Assembly (NCBI RefSeq): GCF_046119375.1
Contig: NW_027362816.1
Span: 2,976,001 to 3,040,000, forward strand
Reading direction: 5' to 3'
DNA length: 64,000 bases
Source of the DNA: Phyllobates terribilis
Taxonomy: Eukaryota
Shown: positions 11,760 through 60,181 of the stretch, one piece after another
How the letters are laid out: every line of letters begins with the position of its first letter
How positions within the stretch are numbered: the stretch's first letter is position 1
Translations under genes and position numbers: made by a program
The notes under the pieces: model-generated
Databases searched by the model: none
What the model was told of the DNA's origin: nothing
What the model saw: only the letters and a program-made list of their open reading frames with translations

Positions 11760-11888
11760 TGCATAATTAATTTGCATTTTATTGCATGATATAAGTATTT
11801 GATCACCCACCAACTAGAAAGAATTCTGCTGGTTTTTCTTTAAGAAGCCCTCCTACACTGCATTCATAACCTGTATTAATTACACCTA
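11760..11888. mobile_element. Tc1 sub-terminal fragment fused to the 3' end of ZNF gene A
   Basis: ATAAGTATTTG...TTTAAGAAGCCCTCCT...CATTCATAACCTGTATTAATTACACCT resembles 45955..46065 of the Tc1 at 45766. Confidence 0.7.
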
Positions 11889-13152
11889 CATTTCCCACAT
11901 TCTGAACATGAAAAAGGCTTCTTCCCTGTGTGGGCTTTCTGGTGGCTATCAAGATACTCTTTCCGAATAAAACATTTCCCACATTCTGAACATGAAAAAG
12001 GCTTCTCCCCGGTGTGGGTTCTCTGATGTTTGAGAAGATTTGATTTGTCTGTAAAACATTTCCCACATTCTGAACATGAAAAAGGCTTCTCCCCTGTGTG
12101 GGTTTTCTGGTGGTTATTAAGATGCGCTTTCCGCATAAAACATTTCCCACATTCTGAACATGAATATGGCTTCTCCCCTGTGTGAGTTTTCACATGCTCA
12201 ATAAGATTTGTTCTCTGATAAAAACATTTCCCACATTCTGAACATGAAAAACGCTTCTCCTCTGTGTGGGTTCTCTGGTGTCGATCAAGATCCGCTTTCT
12301 GAATAAAACATTTCCCACATTCTGAACATGAAAAAGGCTTCTCCTCTGTATGGGTTTTCTGGTGGTTATTAAGATGCGCTTTCCGCATAAAACATTTCCC
12401 ACATTCTGAACATGAATATGGCTTCTCCCCTGTGTGAGTTTTCACATGCTCAATAAGATTTGATCTCTGATAAAAACATTTCCCACATTCTGAACATGAA
12501 AAAGGCTTCTCTGTGTGGGTTCTCTGGTGTCGATCAAGATCCGCTTTCCGAATAAAACATTTCCCACATTCTGAACATAAAAAAGGCTTCTCCCCTGTGT
12601 GGGTTTTCTGGTGGTTATCAAGGTGCTCTTTCCGAATAAAACATTTCCCACATTCTGAACATGAAAAAGGCTCCTTCCCTTTGTGGGTTTTCTGGTGGTT
12701 ATCAAGATACTCTTTCCGAATAAAACATTTCCCACATTCTGAACATGAAAAAGGCTTCTCCCCGGTGTGGGTTCTCTGATGTTTGAGAAGATTTGATTTG
12801 TCTGTAAAACATTTCCCACATTCTGAACATGAATATGGCTTCTCCCCTGTGTGAATTCTCTGATGTATAACAAGATCTGATTTACGATTAAAATGTTTAC
12901 AACATTCTGAACATGATAATGGCTTCACCCCTGAGTGAGCTCTCCGCTCCTTAGCTCCCTTTCTGTGCTCAACATTCTGTAATGAATCAGAAGATAGGAC
13001 CACTTGACCATAAAATAGATCTTTTCTGTGAAGGGCTGATGTTATATCTGAAGCAATGGCATGCTCTTCATATGTATCTGGTGTGATACCATGATCATCT
13101 GCTTTCAAATCTGAGGATATCATATGTCTTTCTGAGTTCATGGTAAAGGCAT
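11876..13152 (-). CDS. Zinc-finger exon of gene A (12 complete C2H2 fingers plus a truncated 13th)
   Basis: ORF 11876..13174 with CSECGKCF-x8-H-x3-H repeats and TGEKP linkers. Acceptor TTCTTGGCAG|AT at 13152. Confidence 0.95.
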
Positions 13153-28100: not shown

Positions 28101-29503
28101 CATGGCAACTACCAGACCCAGCAGACACAGCGCGGGATCCCGGATACAAGGTAAGAGGGGTTACGTCCCCTTGCTCCCGGAATGCTGCAATCGACTTCGA
28201 TCGCAGCATTTTGGGGATTAATGTGCCACTGTGGGATCGCTCCTGGCACATATTACCGGGTGTTAGCCAAAAGGCCCAGGGCACAGGGACGTACTATTAC
28301 TGACATTGTCAGTAAGGGGTTAATAAACAATTAATAGAGAGATTACAAATCCGGACAGGACACAGATTATTACATGTAATACATTTTTTTTTAATCTGAG
28401 ACTTCTCTGCATTTAGTGGTTACTACTCACCTGGGTAGTCATATGTAGGAATCTCATCTTTACACCACTCATCACCCCTCACATATGTCTCTGTAGTATT
28501 AATATGGGTCAGATCTTCACCCTGAAACAAATATTGTAAAAGTCACAGACAGATGATGGAGAAGTCCCATCTATGATCAGCTCTAATCCTGCCATCTCCA
28601 CCGTCCTCATTACACAAGTATAAAACATATAATACTGGTGGATAAAACAAGACTGAACACAAGACCTTCACAGCCGTCTACACATCATAGGGGAGATCTC
28701 ATGACACCTTCTCTCCATCTACCTGATGATCCTGAGGAACATTGGGGTCTTCTTGTTTACAGTCCTGTGGAAGAAGAGGACGGGGACATCTCTCTGGTGT
28801 TGTCCTCTTACTGGATATATCTGGAGGAAACACATACAGGGACTGAATTCATTCTTTACATACAGATAATTATAGGCCGTGTGTATTTAGTCCTGTCTAT
28901 TACCTGGTGATGTGAGGGGCTGGGGAACCTCCATCATGATGTCCTTGTACAGATCTTTGTGTCCTTCTAAATACTCCCACTCCTCCATGGAGAAATAGAC
29001 AGCGACATCCTGACATCTTATAGGAACCTGACACATACAATGATACCATCATCCCCCCGATCCCTTCATAGCGTTACTGTATAATGTCCCAGCATTCACA
29101 GCAGTGTTACCTCTCCAGTCAGCAGCTCAATCATCTTGTAGGTGAGTTCTGGGATCTTCTGCTCATTGATGTCCTCATGTATCAGGGGGTGAGGTGGAGG
29201 CTCTGTGATTGGGTTCAGGGGTCTTCCCCATCCCTCAGACACAGGGACCTGACAGCGCTCACTAGAGGTCTTCTTCACTACTATGTAATCCTGGTTATGG
29301 AGAGACACATTAATAAATCTCACTACAGACATTTCCAGAGTCCTCATCTCTCCAGTTCTGTCCATCTGTTATTCCCATAGATAAGAATGATGTAATGTGA
29401 CGTCATCAGAATCTCTCACCTCTCCAGTAAGCCGGAAGAGGATCTCTAGGGTGAGGTGGAATATCCTCTCCGCCATCTTCTTCTTCTCCTTCTCCTTCTC
29501 CAT
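11876..29503 (-). CDS. FAX/KRAB-like C2H2 zinc-finger protein A (XlCOF/XlCGF-type), 617 aa, 12 fingers
   Basis: Exons 29420..29503, 29111..29290, 28904..29027 ([34 protein letters not shown]-like), 28723..28820, 28431..28521, 11876..13152. All introns are GT-AG with compatible phases (0,0,1,0,1), 1854 nt open in total. Confidence 0.85.
13388..13555. repeat. 18-bp minisatellite GAGCAGGGCAGCGCGGTG, ~9 copies
   Basis: Tandem array seen directly in the last intron of gene A. Confidence 0.9.
17093..17932 (+). pseudogene. Gypsy gag, frameshifted
   Basis: MDPVAGL...[28 protein letters not shown], zinc knuckle [14 protein letters not shown]. Confidence 0.9.
17929..21200 (+). pseudogene. Gypsy pol (PR-RT-RH-IN-chromodomain), disrupted
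   Basis: ORF pieces 17929..18114, 18115..18813, 18819..19280, 19327..20457, 20466..20702, 20696..21292. Chromodomain [16 protein letters not shown]. Confidence 0.92.
23374..24591 (+). mobile_element. Solo LTR-like element
   Basis: TGTGGCGCCCCTG ... GGGGCGCGTCACA termini. The same start motif occurs at the reverse complement of 36026. No clean TSD. Confidence 0.7.
26389..26686. mobile_element. Palindromic MITE nested in the piggyBac-like element
   Basis: Arms TAGTCTTGAGTGCAAGTGCTCGCTACTTGAGTTTGCATCGGG / CCCGATGAAAACTCAAGTAGCGAGCACTTGTGCTCAACACTA. TSD degenerate (GTTGTCAT vs GTCATCAT). Confidence 0.8.
26720..27015. repeat. Telomere-like minisatellite, 17-bp unit AACCCTAACCCTAGCAC
   Basis: Tandem CCCTAA-containing units seen directly. 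Confidence 0.9.
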
Positions 29504-37384: not shown

Positions 37385-37912
37385 TAGGCAACAACCCATT
37401 AATCAGCACATTGTCTGTTTGCCCCTGCTAAGTGAGCACAGGAAGGTGGGGGCCAGGAGTGCTTTGGTCACATCACAAAATGTCCAACAATATGTGATCC
37501 ACAATATTCACCCCACTTTGTAACATTATGTCCCATTAGCTGCATAGGTGCTACGACAACCCCCATGTGGAAAAATCTTGGAGTACGGGGTTGATCCATC
37601 ACAGGTAAATTTGCAATAAAAAAGATGGCATCACTTGCTAACTTCTGCGATCAACCAGTGAGGAGTTATCGCAGAAAATTAGAGATTGAATAAAACCAAG
37701 AAGGGCGGAGACCAGCCCACGTGAGGTCATCACAGGGGAGTGTGTGGGCAGCGCCCCCGTCGGCATAAAAGATCAGGCCGAATATTGATCTATACTCATG
37801 CCGGGTTATACATATTTGTGTAAGCGGGGGTCCTGTTCCATAACGGTTCGTTTGAGTGCTTCCCTCCAGCTAAACTGAATGGTCTCTGCGATCGGCCTAG
37901 TAAGTCCTTCTA

Positions 37913-40900
37913 TTAATCCCTTTTTATTTTGTGTAACTGTATATGCTGTATTAAACATGAACCCTGGGTGAAACATTTCCCACATTCTGGACATGAATAT
38001 GACTTTTCTCCAGTGTTAATTCTTTGATGTTTTTGAAGATCTGGTTTCCGGATAAAACATTTCCCACATTCTGAACATGAATATGGCTTCTCTCCTGTAT
38101 GACTTCTGTAATGTTTATGAAGATCTGGTTTCTGGGTAAAACATTTCCCACATTCTGGACATAAATATGGCTTTTCTCCAGTGTGAATTCTTTGATGTTT
38201 TTGAAGATCTGGTTTCTGGATAAAACATTTACCACATTCTGGACATAAATGTGGCTTTTCTCCAGTGTGAATTCTTTGATGTCTTTGAAGATCTGGTTTC
38301 CGGATAAAACATTTCCCACATTCTGAACATGAATATGGCTTCTCTCCTGTGTGAATTCTTTGATGTTTATGAAGATCTGATTTCTGGAGAAAACATTTCC
38401 CACATTCTGAACATGAATATGGCTTCTCTCCTGTATGACTTCTGTAATGTTTAAGCAAATCTGACTTATTGCTGAAACATTTCGCACATTCTGAACATGA
38501 AAATGGCTTTTCTCCTGTGTGACTTCTTTGATGCATAAGCAATTTAGATTTATGTTCAAAACATTCCCCACATTCTTGACATAAATATGGCTTTTCTCCA
38601 GTGTGAATTCTTTGATGTTTATGAAGATCTGGTTTCTGGATAAAACATTTCCCACATTCTGAACATGAATATGGCTTCTCTCCTGTGTGAAATGTTTGAT
38701 GTTTATGAAGATCTCGTTTCTGGATAAAACATTTCCCACATTCTGAACATGAATATGGCTTCTCTCCTGTATGACTTCTGTAATGTTTAAGCAAATATGA
38801 CTTATCGCTGAAACATTTCCCACATTCTGAACATGAAAACGGCTTTTCTCCTGTGTGACTTCTCTGATGTGAAAGCAATTTATATTTAGTTTTAAAACAT
38901 TTCCCACATTCTGAACAGGAAAATGGTTTCTTCCCTGTGGGAATTATTTGATGTTCGACATCCCTTCTCTGGCTTTCATTTTGCTTAACAGTCTGTGATG
39001 AATCCAAGTAGATGACAGATTGAAAAGGCTCAGATGATTGATTTCTGCTCTGAAGGGCTGGAGGTATAGCTGGAATAATGGCACGCTTTTCATAGGTATC
39101 TGGTTTGACACCACAGTCATCTGCCAAGAATAAATCTGATTTTATTATTTTTTAATATCAATGCCTTATATTTTATAACATTTCTCTATACATAATTCTA
39201 TACAAATCAAAGTATAATGAAACTATGACCTAAGACAGTGGTGAGCCACCTGTGCACAAATCCCATGGTACTGAACCCCTAACGTACCATCGACGAACAT
39301 AATACATATACGCAGAAACTTTTGAGGCAATAAAGGGAGGATTAAAAATAAGCTTTATTACATTACAATCTAAAGCAACAGAGAAAAATACACGCCATAA
39401 AAACAATGAAGATGGGGTATTCCCATCTCTGAGAAACTATACCAATATGTAGTAGGTATAATAAAAATAAGATTAGCAAATATCTCCAATTACAAATGTA
39501 GTATAGTTCTTTTGATTCGCTATGTCGCTTACCCCATGTTCAGGGCATTGCAAGTTAGTTGCTAGTGGTCATAACTATGGATACCTAAGCTACTGCAATG
39601 CTCTGCACATGGGATAAGTGACAAAGAATCAGGAGAACTATACCACATTTCTAATTGGAGTCTGAATAAACCTCGACCTCACACATCGACAGGTACTCCG
39701 AGTGTCCTGGGATCACCACGCTGACGTAGCGACCCTCCATCCCCTTACAGCAAAAGGACATGGTGGCAGAGACCACATTTGTGACTGTGCCGCACACTGG
39801 AATGTTATTGTCAGGGGAGTTCCCGATTCGGACCTCGGCCCCCATCAGTCGCTCCAGACCACAGTCCATCCTGTTAGTTATGGCGATGCTGGATATCTTG
39901 TAGCTCTGGCCCAGGTCCAGCTTCCACCAGGGATCCTTCTCCAGGTTGGTGTGGGTGCAGAAGCCACTACTGAAGTCGGTGTCTTTGTTCCCATCGATGG
40001 CGTTCTTAGCCAATATGCTCCTGGTGGCATACGGATAGTCCGACACCTGGGAGGCCACTCTGGTCCTTGCTATGTTTGTGGCTACAGGTGCCGGAGCGCA
40101 TCCCAGAGCCAGAACCACAGATCCCAGTAGAATCAGAGAAGATGGGGGTCGGTACGTCAGCGTGGTGATCCCAGGACACTCGGAGTACATTTCTAATTGG
40201 AGGCATTTTCTATTATTATTATCCTACCTACTATATTTTGGGATAGGATTTTGGAGGTGAGAATACCCCTTCAAGGCTGTATGCTTAGGACTTATCCAGG
40301 ACTCATCCAGATGCCTCATTCCATTGTTTTTTGTGATTACGTTTATCCCTCTTAAATGGCTTTTTGTATTTTTATGTGTTTTCAACTGCGATCTAATAAA
40401 TTGTATTTTTAATCTCTATATTGTCTCACATTTCTCTGTACACAGTCATGGTTGAAATAGTTGACGCCCTTAAAATTGTTCCAGAAAATGAAGTATTTCT
40501 CCTAGAACATTATTGCAATTACACCTGTTTTGTTATAGACACGTTTATTTCCTTTGTGTGTATTGTCACTGATCTTTTCTAGTGAAATGTTCAATGGAGA
40601 ATCAAAACTGGACCTTGACCAGATTATTACCTGACCCTACTTCTAAACCCTTTTCTGATCTGCCTACATACTTCTTGTTGACCGCAGAATGGTTTGGCTT
40701 CTCACTTGACTGTCCTTCCGGGACGTGTACTGCTGCTAGATATTGACCTTGGCTTCTCCAGCTTAGATGTTCACCTGCCTGACTTCTGTGTGTGGCCCGG
40801 CTCTCTTCTTGACATTCAGCTGTAATCTGGCAACTCACAACTACATTACAATTGGAGACATGGCGCCTTTCTGCAGCAAATAAAATCCCATTTAACCAAT

Positions 40901-42126
40901 GAAACTTTGCTGCCAAAATGCGTTAATCAAAAAAGGTGCAAAAAAAAGCTTTTTTTGTTATGCATCAAATCTATCTGCAAGTAAAATGCACGTCAATTAC
41001 TTGTGTGATCAAACTCATAATATAATGACCACAGGATCTGTGACTTCTCTGTATTTAGTGGTTACTACTCACCTGGGTAGTCATATGTAGGAATCTCCTC
41101 TTTACACCGCTCATCACCCCTCACATATGTCTCTGTAGTATTAATATGGGTCAGATCTTCACCCTGAAACAAATATTGTAAAAGTCACAAACAGATGGAG
41201 AAGTCTCATCTATGATCAGCTCTAATCCTGCCATCTCCACCGCTCTCATTACACAAGTATAAAACATATAATACTGGTGGATAAAACAAGACTGAGCACA
41301 AGACCCTCACAGCTGTCTACACATCATAGGGGAGATCTCATGACACCTTCTCTCCATCTACCTGATGATCCTGAGGAACATTGGGGTCTTCTTGTTTACA
41401 GTCCTGTGGAAGAAGAGGACGGGGACATCTCTCTGGTGTTGTCCTCTTACTGGATAGATCTGGAGGAAACACATACAGGGACTGAATTCATTCTTTACAT
41501 ACAGATAATTATAGGCCGTGTGTAATTAGTCCTATTACCTGGTGATGTGAGGGACTGGGGAACCTCCATCATGAAGTCCTTGTACAGATCTTTGTGTTCT
41601 TCTAAATATTCCCACTCCTCCATGGAGAAATAGACAGCGACATCCTGACATCTTATAGGAACCTGACACATACAATGATACCGTCATCCCCCCGATCCCT
41701 CCATAGCGTTACTGTATAATGTCCCAGCATTCCCAGCAGTGTCACCTCTCCAGTCAGCAGCTCAATCATCTTGTAGGTGAGTTCTAGGATCTTCTGGTCT
41801 TTGATGTCCTCATGTATCAGGGGGTGAGGTGGAGGCCTCGTGATTGGGCTCAGGGGTCTTCCCCATCCCTCAGACACAGGGTTCTGACACCGCTCACTAG
41901 AGGTCTTCTTCACTACTATGTAATCCTGGTTATGGAGAGACACATTAATAAATCTCCCTCCAGACATTTCCAGAGTCCTCACCTCTCCAGTTCTGTCCAT
42001 CTGTTATTCCCATAGATAAGAATGATGTAATGTGACGTCATCAGAATCTCTCACCTCTCCAGTAAGCCGGAAGAGGATCTCTAGGGTGAGGTGGAATATC
42101 CTCTCCGCCATCTTGTCTCTGTCCAT
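37913..42126 (-). CDS. FAX/KRAB-like C2H2 zinc-finger protein B, 590 aa, 12 fingers (finger 11 H->N)
   Basis: Exons 42055..42126 (acceptor at 42195), 41746..41925, 41539..41662, 41362..41459, 41073..41163, 37913..39120. GT-AG introns with the same phases as gene A, 1773 nt open. Confidence 0.88.
39651..40190 (-). CDS. F-type lectin (fucolectin) retrocopy, open 179-aa frame
   Basis: Intronless FTL domain (TNIA...[44 protein letters not shown]). Fucose-binding motif H-x26-R-x-D-x4-R is intact. 16-bp TSD ACATTTCTAATTGGAG at 39645..39660 and 40187..40202. Expression unknown. Confidence 0.85.
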   Translation of the reverse strand: MYSECPGITTLTYRPPSSLILLGSVVLALGCAPAPVATNIARTRVASQVSDYPYATRSILAKNAIDGNKDTDFSSGFCTHTNLEKDPWWKLDLGQSYKISSIAITNRMDCGLERLMGAEVRIGNSPDNNIPVCGTVTNVVSATMSFCCKGMEGRYVSVVIPGHSEYLSMCEVEVYSDSN

Positions 42127-43269
42127 ATCAACCTTTGACAGGAAACTTCTCTTATATAGAAGATCTTCACTGAGAGGATCCGATATTGTAGAGACCTGAA
42201 TGAGAAGAAGATGAGAAGATGTAACGTCATCAATAATTCTATGTAATAATACAATCACTGATTCCGGTATAAAGCAGTAATCTGTGGATCTGATCCTGGA
42301 TGATGCCGGAAGAAGAAGTGGATTTTTATGGCGGCCGTTAATGAGCTTCGCTTTGAGGACCGGAGGAGGTTTGGCCTGAACGCTGCACTCGTGGTGTGAA
42401 CACGGACATAGTAGATTATTTAGGGATATTTTCTTGTCCTGCCCTAAACTTGCTTATTCAAGTGAATAGGTCCACGAAAAAGAACAGCCTGTCCACGGAT
42501 GATAGCTGTGTGTTAAAGAGTTTATCCAGGACTATATTATTTTTATAACTATGGGCAGAAGAAGTAAAAGGCAGATAGTTCCTAACTGCCTGCCTGCCCT
42601 GCCTCAATGTCTGCGGGAACAGAGCGGTCACGGACTGCTCCTGCCAGTGACTCTGCGGCTTCTAATGAGTCACGTAGACGGAGCAGCGGCTTCTCTTTGG
42701 CTCTGCTTTCTTGATGGGACGTGACTGACGACATCACACTGATTGTCAGCTGCCTCCCTGCTGCCTCCCTGCGAGCAGCCAGCGGTCAATCAGAGGGATG
42801 ATTTATTTCACCATGCAAAAAAAAACAGACACAAAATAGACGCATAGTGTGAATAACGGCAAATTCTGAGAGACAATAATGGGGAATCTCCACATACCTC
42901 CACCTGCAGACAGGGCCGCCATCAGGGCATCACTGCCCTTACTGCTGTTTGGGGCCCCGTGAGCAGCAGTACAGAGAGGGGCCGGGTCTAGTCAGGGCCC
43001 CCCTCTTGTGCGTCTGCTCACGGCGCTCCATGCACGGCACTCCATGCTGCAATAAAGTGCCGAGCACTGGGGCGCACACCGCCTTAGATGGCGCACATAT
43101 TGGCACCGAGTTCCTTACTGAAGCTGCGCCGCTGCAGCAGCTCCTTCATACTTCAGGAGTCAGGAGCACCCGGTGGCGGCGTGCACCTCCTCATCGCAAC
43201 AGGAGCGCCAGGATGCTGCAGGGATCGTATGTGGGGTAAGTATGACAATTTAATTTTTTTTTTAAAAAT

Positions 43270-58255: not shown

Positions 58256-58339
58256 GGGGAAAAACAAGACTGACCACAAGACCATCACAGCCGTCTACAC
58301 ATCATAGGGGAGATCTCATGACACCTTCTCTCCATCTAC

Positions 58340-60181
58340 CTGATGATCCTGAGGAACATTGGGGTCTTCTTGTTTACAGTCCTGTGGAAGAAGAGGACGG
58401 GGACATCTCTCTGGTGTTGTCCTCTTACTGGATAGATCTGGAGGAAACACATACAGGGACTGAATTCATTCTTTACATACAGATAATTATAGGCCGTGTG
58501 GTTTTAGCCCTGTCTATTACCTGGTGATGTGAGGGGCTGGGGAACCTCCATCATGATGTCCTTGTACAGATCTTTGTGTCCTTCTAAATACTCCCACTCC
58601 TCCATGGAGAAATAGACAGCGACATCCTGACATCTTATAGGAACCTGACACATACAATGATACCGTCATCCCCCCGATCCCTCCATAGCGTTACTGTATA
58701 ATGTCCCAGCATTCCCAGCAGTGTCACCTCTCCAGTCAGCAGCTCAATCATCTTGTAGGTGAGTTCTAGGATCTTCTGGTCATTGATGTCCTCATGTATC
58801 AGGGGGTGAGGTGGAGGCCCCGTGATTGGGCTCAGGGGTCTTCCCCATCCCTCAGACACAGGGTCCTGACAGCGCCCACTAGAGGTCTTCTTCACTACTG
58901 TGTAATCCTGGTTATGGAGAGACACATTAATAAATCTCACTACAGACATTTCCAGAGTCCTCAACTCTCCAGTTCTATCCATCTGTTATTCCCATAGATA
59001 AGAATGATGTAATGTGACGCCATCAGAATCCAGGGGCGGAACTACTGCCCGTGCAGCCCGTTCATTGAACGGGGGCCCCGAGGGAGAGGGGGCCCCTCCA
59101 GCAGGGCCGCCATCAGGGCATGACTGCCCTGACTCCAGTATGGGGCCCAGCTGGTAGGGGCCCCCTCGGAGCCCCGTTGGGGGGCCCCCCTCTTGTGCAT
59201 CTCTCTCATGGGGCCCCCAGCCCCATGCTAAGCGCCGGGTCCGGGACATATGAGCGCTGCGCTGCTGCGCCTTCATGATTCCCCTGACTTCCGGTCATGT
59301 GAAGGCGCCGTCACATGGCCGGAAGTCAGGAGAACCTGGTGTCAGCGATTTGGACGAGCGCCAGGATTCTGCAAGGATCGCATGGGGGTAAGTATAACAA
59401 GTTTTATTTTTTTTTTAAATACAATTAACTAGGAGTGGGGGGAGATGAGAGCTGCCCACGTGGGGGGGGGGGTGAGAGCTGCCCACGTGGGGGGGGGGGT
59501 GAGAGCTGCCCACGTGAGGGGGGGGGTGAGAGCTGCCCACGTGAGGGGGGGGCGAGAGCTGCCCACGTGAGGGGGGGGGGCGAGAGCTGCCCACGTGAGG
59601 GGGGGGGGCGAGAGCTGCCCACGTGAGGGGGGGGGGCGAGAGCTGCCCACGTGAGGGGGGGGCGAGAGCTGCCCACGTGAGGGGGGGGCGAGAGCTGCCC
59701 ACGTGAGGGGGGGGCGAGAGCTGCCCACGTGAGGGGGGGGCGAGAGCTGCCCACGTGAGGGGGGGGGCGAGAGCTGCCCACGTGAGAGGGGGGGGCGAGA
59801 GCTGCCCACGTGAGGGGGGGGCGAGAGCTGCCCACGTGAGGGGGGGGCGAGAGCTGCCCACGTGAGGGGGGGGCGAGAGCTGCCCACGTGAGGGGGGGGC
59901 GAGAGCTGCCCACGTGAGGGGGGGGCGAGAGCTGCCCACGTGAGGGGGGGTGAGAGCTGCACACGTGAGGGGGAGTGAGAGCTGCACATGGGGGGGTTAT
60001 GTTTACATAACTTTGTTACCTTATGAAGGGCAGGGGGGCCCCCAAAAATTTCTTGCACAGGGGCCCACTACAGTCTGTGTCCGCCCCTGTCAGAATCTCT
60101 CACCTCTCCAGTAAGCCGGAAGAGGATCTCTAGGGTGAGGTGGAATATCCTCTCCGCCATCTTCTTCTTCTCCTTCTCCAT
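58340..60181 (-). pseudogene. ZNF paralog C: FAX/KRAB-like exons 1-4 only
   Basis: Exons 60104..60181, 58728..58907, 58521..58644, 58340..58437 are open with intact splice sites. Intron 4 homology stops at ~58261 against a DIRS terminus, and no exon 5 or finger exon was found between 42196 and 58260. Confidence 0.75.
59031..60089. mobile_element. hAT MITE with E-box minisatellite in intron 1 of copy C
   Basis: TIRs CAGGGGCGGA / TCCGCCCCTG, perfect TSD TCAGAATC. About 20 units of GAGAGCTGCCCACGTGAG(G)n at 59450..59980. Confidence 0.93.

Follow-up and report, generated by a model that had tools for sequence, protein, structure and literature searches.

Can a KRAB zinc-finger gene acquire an alternative last exon from a retrocopy of a secreted lectin that lies in its final intron? 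The question is raised by a locus within a stretch of 64,000 nucleotides of the Phyllobates terribilis genome (contig NW_027362816.1, positions 2,976,001 to 3,040,000; this stretch is referred to below as the window, and its numbering is used throughout). The original prediction was that exon 5 of a KRAB-ZNF gene, here called gene B, could be spliced in frame into a fucolectin copy situated in intron 5, so that a lectin domain would replace the zinc fingers, and that the locus was possibly a nascent chimeric gene.

Results

The Lectin Copy and the Predicted Fusion Frame

Gene B is encoded on the minus strand. Its first four coding exons (42126-42055, 41925-41746, 41662-41539 and 41459-41362), located by reading that strand directly and by script, are bounded by canonical AG/GT sites, and the third of them carries the KRAB box (profile match 5.6e-11). 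As had been claimed, exon 5 (41163-41073; 91 nt) begins in phase 0 and ends in phase 1, with a donor GT at 41072-41071. It is followed by an intron of 1952 nt (intron 5; 39121-41072), which contains a MITE-like element and, on the same strand as the host gene, the lectin copy. Beyond this intron lies a zinc-finger exon (37913-39120) encoding 12 C2H2 fingers, with a phase-1 acceptor, CAG/AT, at 39120 (slashes within sequences and between paired coordinates mark exon junctions). Script translation of exons 1-5 joined to the finger exon (39120-37913) gave an open frame of 590 aa across five canonical junctions, and in Pfam the predicted gene fits the KRAB C2H2 zinc-finger class (KRAB, 5.6e-11; zf-C2H2, 12 stretches). 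The finger exon is the predicted normal splice partner of exon 5.

The proposed alternative splice runs from 41073 to 40081. At 40090-40080 the minus strand reads CACCTGTAG/CC, and the exon created by this splice would begin at 40081. As predicted, the joining of G to CC creates an alanine codon, from which the frame continues through the lectin to a TAG at 39653-39651; exons 1-5 joined to 40081-39651 translate to exactly 331 aa. The AATAAA that had been pointed out is present on the minus strand at 39359-39354, i.e., 292 nt past the stop, just outside the MITE-like element and ahead of the finger-exon acceptor at 39120, and the next such hexamers are the two at 39156 and 39146. The locus has the layout of a chimeric retrogene, in that the host intron contains a retrocopy of matching orientation whose acceptor is in frame (331-aa open frame). 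Intron 5 contains about 141-143 AG dinucleotides, and after five of them (40192, 40081, 40069, 40057 and 39982) a phase-1 entry finds the lectin frame open; given the strand and the open upstream frame, an AG in frame before the domain is therefore to be expected.

The lectin ORF itself (39651-40190, minus strand; 179 aa) matched the Pfam families F5_F8_type_C_2 (PF22633; 3.1e-23) and PF00754 (6.4e-14) and the PDB entries 3cqo (2.1e-68) and 1k12 (1.7e-27). Its protein identity to the chromosomal fucolectins of P. terribilis is about 82-84%.

An Intron-less Copy with a Fossil Exon Junction

Processed pseudogenes are defined by the absence of introns together with a target-site duplication (PMC4151081). 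The insert, which had been described as a fucolectin retrocopy, shows both, i.e., the loss of both parental coding introns and a target duplication of 16 bp. In the fucolectin gene L001 of Eleutherodactylus coqui, intron 1 is in phase 1 (CCT GGA G/gtgag ... ttctcag/CC ATA GAT) and the second coding intron is in phase 2 (CCA GT/gt...ag/G TGC). Judged against this relative, from which the intron positions were taken rather than from the immediate P. terribilis parent, both introns are precisely missing, the copy being continuous over 40082/40081 and 39796/39795; in a chromosomal P. terribilis relative, the 175 aa are encoded over 7.8 kb. Because both parental coding introns are missing, the piece is, as its structure indicates, a processed copy, free of introns, of the mRNA of a single-domain fucolectin. 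Its direct part comprises, on the minus strand, a remnant of parental exon 1 (40082-40145), i.e., signal-peptide codons and the G of the alanine codon without the first four codons and the 5' UTR, and the F-type lectin domain (39661-40081), in which parental exons 2 and 3 are fused at the second fossil junction, 39796/39795.

The AG proposed as an acceptor (40083-40082, minus strand) is the very end of parental exon 1, and the site coincides with the fossil junction at which that exon was joined to exon 2 (40082/40081), so that no selection is required to explain the AG. Nor does the match in frame call for adaptation, since the parental intron and host intron 5 are both in phase 1: with the exon side of the old donor ending in AG, a phase-1 parental intron and a phase-1 host intron produce that match automatically. 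The notion that the stretch upstream of 40081 is a native intron end, i.e., exon capture at the DNA level, was ruled out, because the stretch aligns to the signal-peptide codons of relatives.

We looked for a poly(A) tract and a complete 3' end in the copy and found neither. The copy stops at ...TCA GAC TCC and abuts the duplicated target without an A-run; it has no 3' UTR and ends about 9 codons short of the parental stop. Next to the exon 1 remnant lies an inverted stub (40146-40186, plus strand; 41-48 nt) of the lectin's own 3' part, 94-96% identical to 39688-39735. Standard L1 twin priming is a poor simple fit to this stub, which repeats sequence already present within the direct part, and to the missing poly(A).

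Insertion into a MITE-like Element and Probable Multiplication with the Zinc-Finger Array

A palindromic MITE-like element built of inverted pairs (39411-40272), which would measure about 336 nt if uninterrupted, is split by the insert, and the insert is bracketed by a perfect 16-bp target-site duplication. The upstream copy of the duplication, CTCCAATTAGAAATGT (40187-40202, minus strand), gives the 179-aa ORF its ATG (40190-40188), and the downstream copy (39645-39660, minus strand) gives it its stop. The two copies agree at 16/16 positions, where 0.02 matches would be expected by chance, and the 16-mer occurs once in the palindrome arm that is not interrupted (39466-39518), which makes that arm an internal empty site. 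An 886-nt stretch of the locus folds at -395 kcal/mol, compared with -270 +/- 7 for shuffled sequences (z -18), and the fold includes a near-perfect 48-bp stem of lectin sequence. A scan of 37900-42400 with Rfam gave no match.

The identical 179-aa ORF is found, as an exact database entry, at 4 loci on 4 scaffolds of GCA_046119375.1, and the 90% cluster of the ORF also includes three further variants of 179 aa and three of 149 aa. This locus is one of at least seven near-identical copies, and probably of eleven or more. All copies are one-exon ORFs (540 or 450 bp) in or beside KRAB-ZNF gene models, with copy-to-copy protein identities of 98.9-99.4%, and the ORF is unbroken in every annotated copy.

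The reading that we favor, and consider probable, is that of a processed fucolectin copy in the last intron that has been co-multiplied with the ZNF array, exon 5 being normally spliced to 39120. A copy of a single-domain fucolectin mRNA would have been inserted, with a 16-bp duplication, into a MITE-like element already resident in the last intron; gene B, together with its intron and the insert, would then have multiplied along with the zinc-finger array, yielding near-identical copies on many scaffolds. Exon 5 would normally join 39120, the lectin being removed with the intron and the site at 40081 going unused, and any splice from 41073 to 40081 would be rare noise rather than an established isoform.

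RNA Signal and Conservation of the Lectin Copies

As a measure of RNA we used the share of sequence words found in contigs of putative RNA runs, a measure that is blind to junctions. Lectin-region reads, whose absence had been named in advance as evidence against the fusion, are represented, since lectin words occur in putative RNA contigs. The shares for the lectin body were 0.60 in X1 and 0.55 in X2, the two best runs, compared with about 0.58 and about 0.46 for the rest of 39300-41200. In X4, the flank was represented with little of the lectin. The lectin was about 3.5-fold better represented than the flank in X18, a run of undeclared kind, and about 1.7-fold in X3. This excess in X18 and X3 would fit an RNA that carries the lectin without the intron; a stand-alone retrogene fits it equally well.

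Such a retrogene, i.e., a 179-aa ORF transcribed independently from within the intron or the MITE-like element, whose residual hydrophobic stretch could serve as a signal peptide for a secreted lectin, is in our view unlikely. The ORF retains the hydrophobic core of its parent's signal peptide, the ATG and TAG both lie within the duplicated 16-mer, and the ORF, unbroken at seven or more loci, is annotated by NCBI as a separate one-exon gene, 'fucolectin-like'. However, the copies are so nearly identical that their intact ORFs need no selection. No promoter was identified for the ORF, the 48-bp inverted repeat and the MITE arms would form a very stable hairpin, and no Logan-derived protein of at least 98 aa was found to contain this lectin.

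Sister copies also carry changes at conserved positions, i.e., R107W (in the fucose triad; copy P0123), C133R and D66N, and the 179-aa lineage has lost one Cys of a contiguous pair. A test of 48 conserved columns gave 3-5 hits for the retrocopies and 0-10 (mean 2.1) for working genes, with no separation between them because the copies are too recent for decay to have become visible. In a relative-rate count, there were 8 changes on the 179-aa lineage compared with 2 on the 149-aa lineage, a difference that was not significant (p = 0.11).

The Fossil Junction as a Possible Splice Site

The predicted fusion requires that the fossil AG serve as an alternative 3' splice site and that the transcript be cleaved downstream of the AATAAA. 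The resulting 331-aa KRAB-lectin isoform would have neither fingers nor a signal peptide and would be a young chimera of the TRIM5-CypA type, spread across an amplified ZNF subfamily. We regard this as rather improbable. Its strand and frame are right, an AATAAA precedes the next exon, and the domain that would be acquired is complete, with the H-x26-R-x-D-x4-R fucose motif intact as had been stated; the phase-1 ancestry of the junction nevertheless accounts for the match in frame. The residues H80, R107 and R114 of the 179-aa ORF fall in columns that are H in 49, R in 56 and R in 53 of 58 anuran relatives.

The weak polypyrimidine tract noted earlier was borne out, with 59% pyrimidine at positions -18 to -2 of the 40081 site. 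There is an AG-free zone of 95 nt upstream, with no AG between 40180 and 40083, and 40082-40145, which would need to serve as both pyrimidine tract and branch region, is 63% pyrimidine. The substitution G36V (GGA to GTA), common to all four 179-aa variants and specific to that lineage, changes GAG/ to TAG/ and thereby strengthens the acceptor at position -3. On a Shapiro-Senapathy-type matrix, which is crude and a rough guide only, the 40081 acceptor scores -1.2 bits and ranks 17th of 141 intron AGs (the real exon 3 acceptor is also low, at -1.7), but the upstream decoys at 40974 (5.0) and 40870 (4.8) outscore even the true finger-exon acceptor at 39120 (4.3).

No fusion protein emerged from the databases searched. 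There was no protein with both a KRAB and a lectin domain (PF01352 + PF00754) among candidates of 98-490 aa, and no KRAB+lectin product in the NCBI annotation. A near-identical lectin within a longer protein was not found among representatives of 1.84 billion proteins, a weak negative because that search was swamped by multi-domain lectins. The excess of lectin words over flank in X18 and X3 would be in keeping with a fusion transcript, but there is no such excess in X1 and X2, and in X4 the flank outweighs the lectin.

The chemistry of the domain also argues against the fusion. The F-type lectin fold contains disulfides and binds extracellular fucosides; in the eel agglutinin AAA, the fucose-site triad is His52, Arg79 and Arg86, and Cys82-Cys83 form a disulfide, a pair that has been lost in some domains (PMC5712786). 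As the original prediction had it, this copy has DCG in place of the DCC of its relatives, so that the contiguous Cys-Cys pair is absent and reads C-G; Cys occupies these two columns in 43/58 and 42/58 anuran relatives, respectively, and is thus common but not universal. The Asn of the NNNP motif, otherwise invariant, is Ile in this copy. A nuclear or cytosolic copy lacking one Cys of the contiguous pair would be unlikely to function as a lectin.

Taken together, the suggestion of a possible nascent chimeric gene stands as regards the retrocopy and its in-frame potential for 331 aa. The step to a new gene is unsupported, in view of the fossil AG, the weak site, the lack of a fusion product, the multi-copy state and the absence of enrichment in X1 and X2. 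Highly improbable is the strongest version, in which the GGA-to-GTA change has sharpened the fossil junction, functional as a 3' splice site, and the whole amplified KRAB-ZNF subfamily of the poison frog makes a finger-less KRAB-F-type-lectin isoform. If true, it would represent a TRIMCyp-like domain swap multiplied by array expansion, and phase-1 signal-peptide introns would predispose retrocopies of secreted proteins to in-frame capture. A real fusion would be a rare example among vertebrates of a domain captured through retroposition, at an early stage and in many parallel copies.

There is very little chance that the inverted lectin pieces and MITE arms form a long dsRNA in the host pre-mRNA, giving rise to small RNAs against parental fucolectin mRNAs or to an editing substrate: the fold described above is far more stable than its shuffles and includes the lectin stem, but just 41-48 nt of lectin are duplexed in this copy, the chromosomal lectin genes share only about 82% protein identity, and Rfam gave no match.

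Discussion

The reading that we prefer, a processed copy carried along in the last intron of a multiplying KRAB-ZNF gene, makes the present value of the finding mainly cautionary. Intron-less copies keep the parental ...AG at their old junctions, and a copy of a secreted protein therefore has a phase-1 pseudo-acceptor after its signal peptide. Because this pseudo-acceptor is built in, the potential for in-frame fusion with phase-1 host introns is no evidence of a new gene. A practical consequence is that the 'fucolectin-like' models of NCBI on unplaced scaffolds are intronic retrocopies, probably co-amplified with the ZNF array, which affects counts of lectin genes in this genome.

As a lectin, the copy resembles MsaFBP32 (3cqo) and the eel agglutinin AAA (1k12) in sequence and in the basic His/Arg/Arg triad. 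In AAA, however, the contiguous Cys pair contacts fucose, whereas one of the two is Gly in this copy, and compared with the single-domain fucolectins of anurans the native start, the C-terminal tail and the gene context have been lost. As a retrocopy, it is like those made by LINEs in that introns are gone at exact positions and the target duplication, at 16 bp, is of L1-like length. Unlike the usual LINE product, it lacks a poly(A) and a 3' UTR, ends about 9 codons before the stop, has a truncated 5' end with an inverted internal duplicate, and borrows both the start and the stop codon of its ORF from the duplicated target.

Besides TRIM5-CypA, the classic chimeric retrogenes include jingwei and PIPSL. 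In TRIM5-CypA, a processed copy lies on the same strand in a host intron (owl monkey) or 3' UTR (macaque), and splicing to an acceptor inside the retrocopy can swap the C-terminal specificity domain of the host protein, the fusion transcript and its antiviral function having been demonstrated (PMC2924388, PMC3917441). By contrast, the fusion at the present locus is a prediction from the sequence frame, and the insert, which is without poly(A), bears an inverted stub and exists in multiple copies. TRIMCyp also acquired a cytosolic protein, whereas the domain here is an extracellular lectin bearing disulfides. What the two systems share is a same-strand intronic retrocopy with an internal acceptor and, with it, a possible swap of the C-terminal domain.

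Structure of Gene B and the In-Frame Join

Gene B, a KRAB C2H2 zinc-finger gene, was rebuilt by script after direct reading of the minus strand from 39000 to 42420. Its coding exons 1 (42126-42055), 2 (41925-41746), 3 (41662-41539, carrying the KRAB box; Pfam, 5.6e-11) and 4 (41459-41362), all on the minus strand, have canonical AG/GT borders, as does exon 5 (41163-41073), whose 91 nt begin in phase 0 and finish with a lone G at 41073. The normal partner of exon 5 is the finger exon (39120-37913), which has a phase-1 acceptor (CAG|AT) and encodes twelve C2H2 fingers; exons 1-5 and the finger exon, joined by the script, encode a protein of 590 residues.

The original prediction was that exon 5 could instead be spliced from 41073 to 40081, within a fucolectin copy in intron 5 (39121-41072), to yield a KRAB-lectin protein. 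The underlying sequence observation was confirmed in all details. Exon 5 ends in phase 1, and both direct reading and the script showed that its final G and the CC at 40081 form an alanine codon. The joined frame is open for exactly 331 residues, up to a TAG at 39653-39651; an AATAAA is present at 39359-39354 on the minus strand; and the lectin has the motif H-x26-R-x-D-x4-R and the reading DCG.

Read-through of the exon-4 donor (CAG|gtagat) meets a TGA at 41340-41338 after eight codons (41338-41361, minus strand). The end of a 272-residue KRAB-only model given by NCBI at one sister locus matches the offset of this stop exactly, so that a finger-less KRAB isoform made by intron-4 retention is already modelled for the family. 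An ATG at 39300-39298 is followed by TTC GTC GAT G|gtacgt (39286-39300, minus strand), a phase-1 donor that can be joined to the finger exon at 39120; the product, MFVD plus 402 residues, is 406 residues long, and a 406-residue finger-only NCBI model at sister loci has the same offset.

Origin and Insertion of the Lectin Copy

The ORF at 39651-40190 encodes a 179-residue F-type lectin domain (Pfam PF22633, 3e-23) that matches the solved lectins MsaFBP32 (3cqo; 2e-68) and eel agglutinin (1k12; 2e-27), and an identical sequence is recorded for Phyllobates terribilis (assembly GCA_046119375.1). The closest chromosomal fucolectin genes, P0003 and P0127, are 81-84% identical to it, depending on the alignment; P0003 takes 7.8 kb to encode 175 residues, and therefore has introns. 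The parental introns were mapped in one relative, at a fucolectin locus of Eleutherodactylus coqui (L001) with three coding exons. Its first intron, in phase 1, lies within an alanine codon after the signal peptide, between ...GAA CCT GGA G|gtgaga at the end of exon 1 and ttctcag|CC ATA GAT ATA GCA AGA at the start of exon 2, and its second, in phase 2, separates CCA GT|gtaagt from ctccag|G TGC GGT. The window is uninterrupted at both points (CCT GTA G|CC ACA AAC ATA GCA AGG at 40082|40081, and CCA GT|G TGC GGC at 39796|39795), so the lectin copy is processed, and its description as a retrocopy was correct.

Read against L001, the proposed acceptor (40083-40082) is no arbitrary AG: parental exon 1 ended in these two bases, on the exon side of the old donor, and the sequence after them is parental exon 2. 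Host exon 5 and the lectin match in frame because both introns are in phase 1. Intron 5 contains 143 AGs, and from five of them a phase-1 join would enter the open lectin frame, so that some AG in frame before the domain was to be expected anyway. We consider it probable that this is an intronic processed fucolectin copy co-amplified with the KRAB-ZNF array, the in-frame "acceptor" being a fossil exon junction that is unused or marginally used.

The copy sits within a palindromic MITE-like element in intron 5 (arm pairs 39411-39470/40213-40272, 39466-39500/40186-40220 and 39484-39518/39626-39660). A perfect 16-bp direct repeat, CTCCAATTAGAAATGT, lies on both sides of the insert (40202-40187 and 39660-39645; 0.02 matches expected by chance). 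The uninterrupted palindrome arm has a single copy of the 16-mer with the same neighbors, and this internal empty site shows the repeat to be a duplication made on insertion. The 16-mer holds both an ATG and a TAG, the upstream copy (40187-40202) starting the ORF and the downstream copy (39645-39660) stopping it. The insert itself (40186-39661, 526 nt) is atypical. It lacks poly(A) and a 3' UTR; the first four parental codons and the 5' UTR are absent, and so are some nine codons at the parental C-terminal end. It opens with 41-48 nt that repeat, inverted and at 94-96%, its own segment 39688-39735, and this short stub may have arisen through deletions within the palindrome. The last four lectin bases (CTCC) overlap the 16-mer, and microhomology at the 3' junction is possible.

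Sister Copies and Constraint

The identical 179-residue protein is encoded on four scaffolds of 1.8-8.8 Mb each, and three more 179-residue variants differ by one or two residues. Three 149-residue variants, at four more places, start natively with MNLV..., retain DCCPERL and terminate in ...VVIP. All lectin copies are one-exon ORFs (540 or 450 bp) within or next to KRAB-ZNF gene models. For two of the four loci with the identical protein, the gene model that comes next begins 351 bp past the lectin, equivalent to the ATG at 39300 here, and from this same spacing it follows that the flanks are shared too. The simplest reading would be that the lectin entered a ZNF intron once and that the array was then amplified.

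The exon 1-5 cassette of gene B (41036-42114) recurs in the same orientation at 28394-29479 (96.3%), and part of it at 58258-59030 (96.5%), with homology stopping 37 nt past the exon-5 donor. For the finger exon (37971-38955), similarity to its nearest counterpart (11888-12938) is only about 77%. It seems that recombination or duplication acted separately on the array's N-terminal modules and on its finger exons.

Within the 179-residue group the copies are 98.9-99.4% alike, which is too similar for a verdict on constraint. Among 48 columns with conservation of 90% or more across 58 anuran relatives, the retrocopies break three to five and working genes 0-10 (mean 2.1). One cysteine of the contiguous pair, which in the eel agglutinin AAA contacts fucose (PMC5712786), is glycine in all 179-residue copies; the invariant asparagine of NNNP is isoleucine in all lectin copies; and R107W (a triad residue), C133R and D66N occur in single sister copies. 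Eight changes fall on the 179-residue lineage versus two on the 149-residue lineage (p = 0.11). The changes seen in the copies are not reassuring as to function.

RNA Signal and Acceptor Strength

Four presumed-RNA runs from the same organism (X1-X4) contained 0.59, 0.48, 0.34 and 0.29 of 182 words sampled from 39300-41200. The share for the lectin body (40 words from 39661-40145, assumed to be a subset of the 182) was compared with that for the non-lectin remainder. These shares were 0.60 and about 0.58 in X1 (ratio about 1.0) and 0.55 and about 0.46 in X2 (about 1.2), and the signal in both looks like unspliced or intronic RNA. In X4 the lectin share was at most 0.13, an upper bound because the run fell outside the best four of its study, the fourth of which stood at 0.13; the remainder was at least 0.34, and the ratio less than 0.4. 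The values were 0.50 and about 0.30 (about 1.7) in X3, and 0.53 and about 0.15 (about 3.5) in X18, a run of unknown kind. The latter two leave room for RNA with the lectin but without the intron; a stand-alone ORF, a terminal exon joined by splicing, sister copies whose flanks differ, or a parent missing from the annotation could each equally be its source. The NCBI annotation models the lectin as a separate one-exon gene; a stand-alone lectin retrogene seems to us unlikely.

A real KRAB-lectin fusion isoform is in our estimation quite improbable. Its acceptor does have T at position -3, within a Val codon (GTA) present in all 179-residue copies. The same codon is Gly (GGA) in the 149-residue copies, the chromosomal genes and 54 of the 58 anuran relatives, so that a lineage-specific G to T change turned GAG| into TAG|. 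The stretch from 40180 to 40083 is AG-free, and the 62 nt upstream of the acceptor are 63% pyrimidine, because of Leu/Ser-rich signal-peptide codons. However, with a Shapiro-Senapathy-type matrix, which is a rough guide only, the 40081 site scored -1.2 bits (rank 17 of 141 intron AGs), whereas the true finger-exon acceptor at 39120, with 4.3 bits, was exceeded by two sites upstream of the lectin, 40974 with 5.0 bits and 40870 with 4.8. The real exon-3 acceptor scores -1.7, and the matrix thus discriminates poorly. A KRAB-fused lectin would also have no signal peptide and would reside where conditions are reducing and fucosylated ligands are out of reach, an expectation drawn from the established properties of F-type lectins. 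KRAB and this lectin did not occur in one protein among proteins of 98-313 or 154-490 residues, no Logan-derived protein carried this lectin, and no near-identical lectin lay within a longer protein among 1.84 billion representative proteins.

The two upstream sites are strong acceptor-like sites on the minus strand, with first exonic bases at 40974 (cattttacttgcag|A) and 40870 (tttatttgctgcag|A), the latter opening a phase-1 frame of 89 codons. Both are better cryptic-exon candidates than the lectin site.

In the predicted RNA fold of the 886-nt stretch 39400-40285, the MITE arms and a 48-bp stem of lectin sequence enclose the lectin in one very stable hairpin (-395 kcal/mol versus -270 ± 7 for shuffles; z -18), and there were no Rfam matches in 37900-42400; that the locus is a source of double-stranded RNA is very improbable.

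Discussion

The general lesson from this locus has more use than the particular claim of a fusion: when a retrocopy derives from a secreted protein, its fossil junctions act as built-in pseudo-acceptors of phase 1. Compared with a processed copy as defined in PMC4151081, the lectin copy likewise has no introns and is flanked by a target duplication, but has no poly(A). In TRIM5-CypA, splicing adds a retrocopy that lies within an intron of the host gene, and so supplies a new C-terminal domain (PMC2924388, PMC3917441). The mechanism hypothesized here would be the same, and the locus offers the structural preconditions only.
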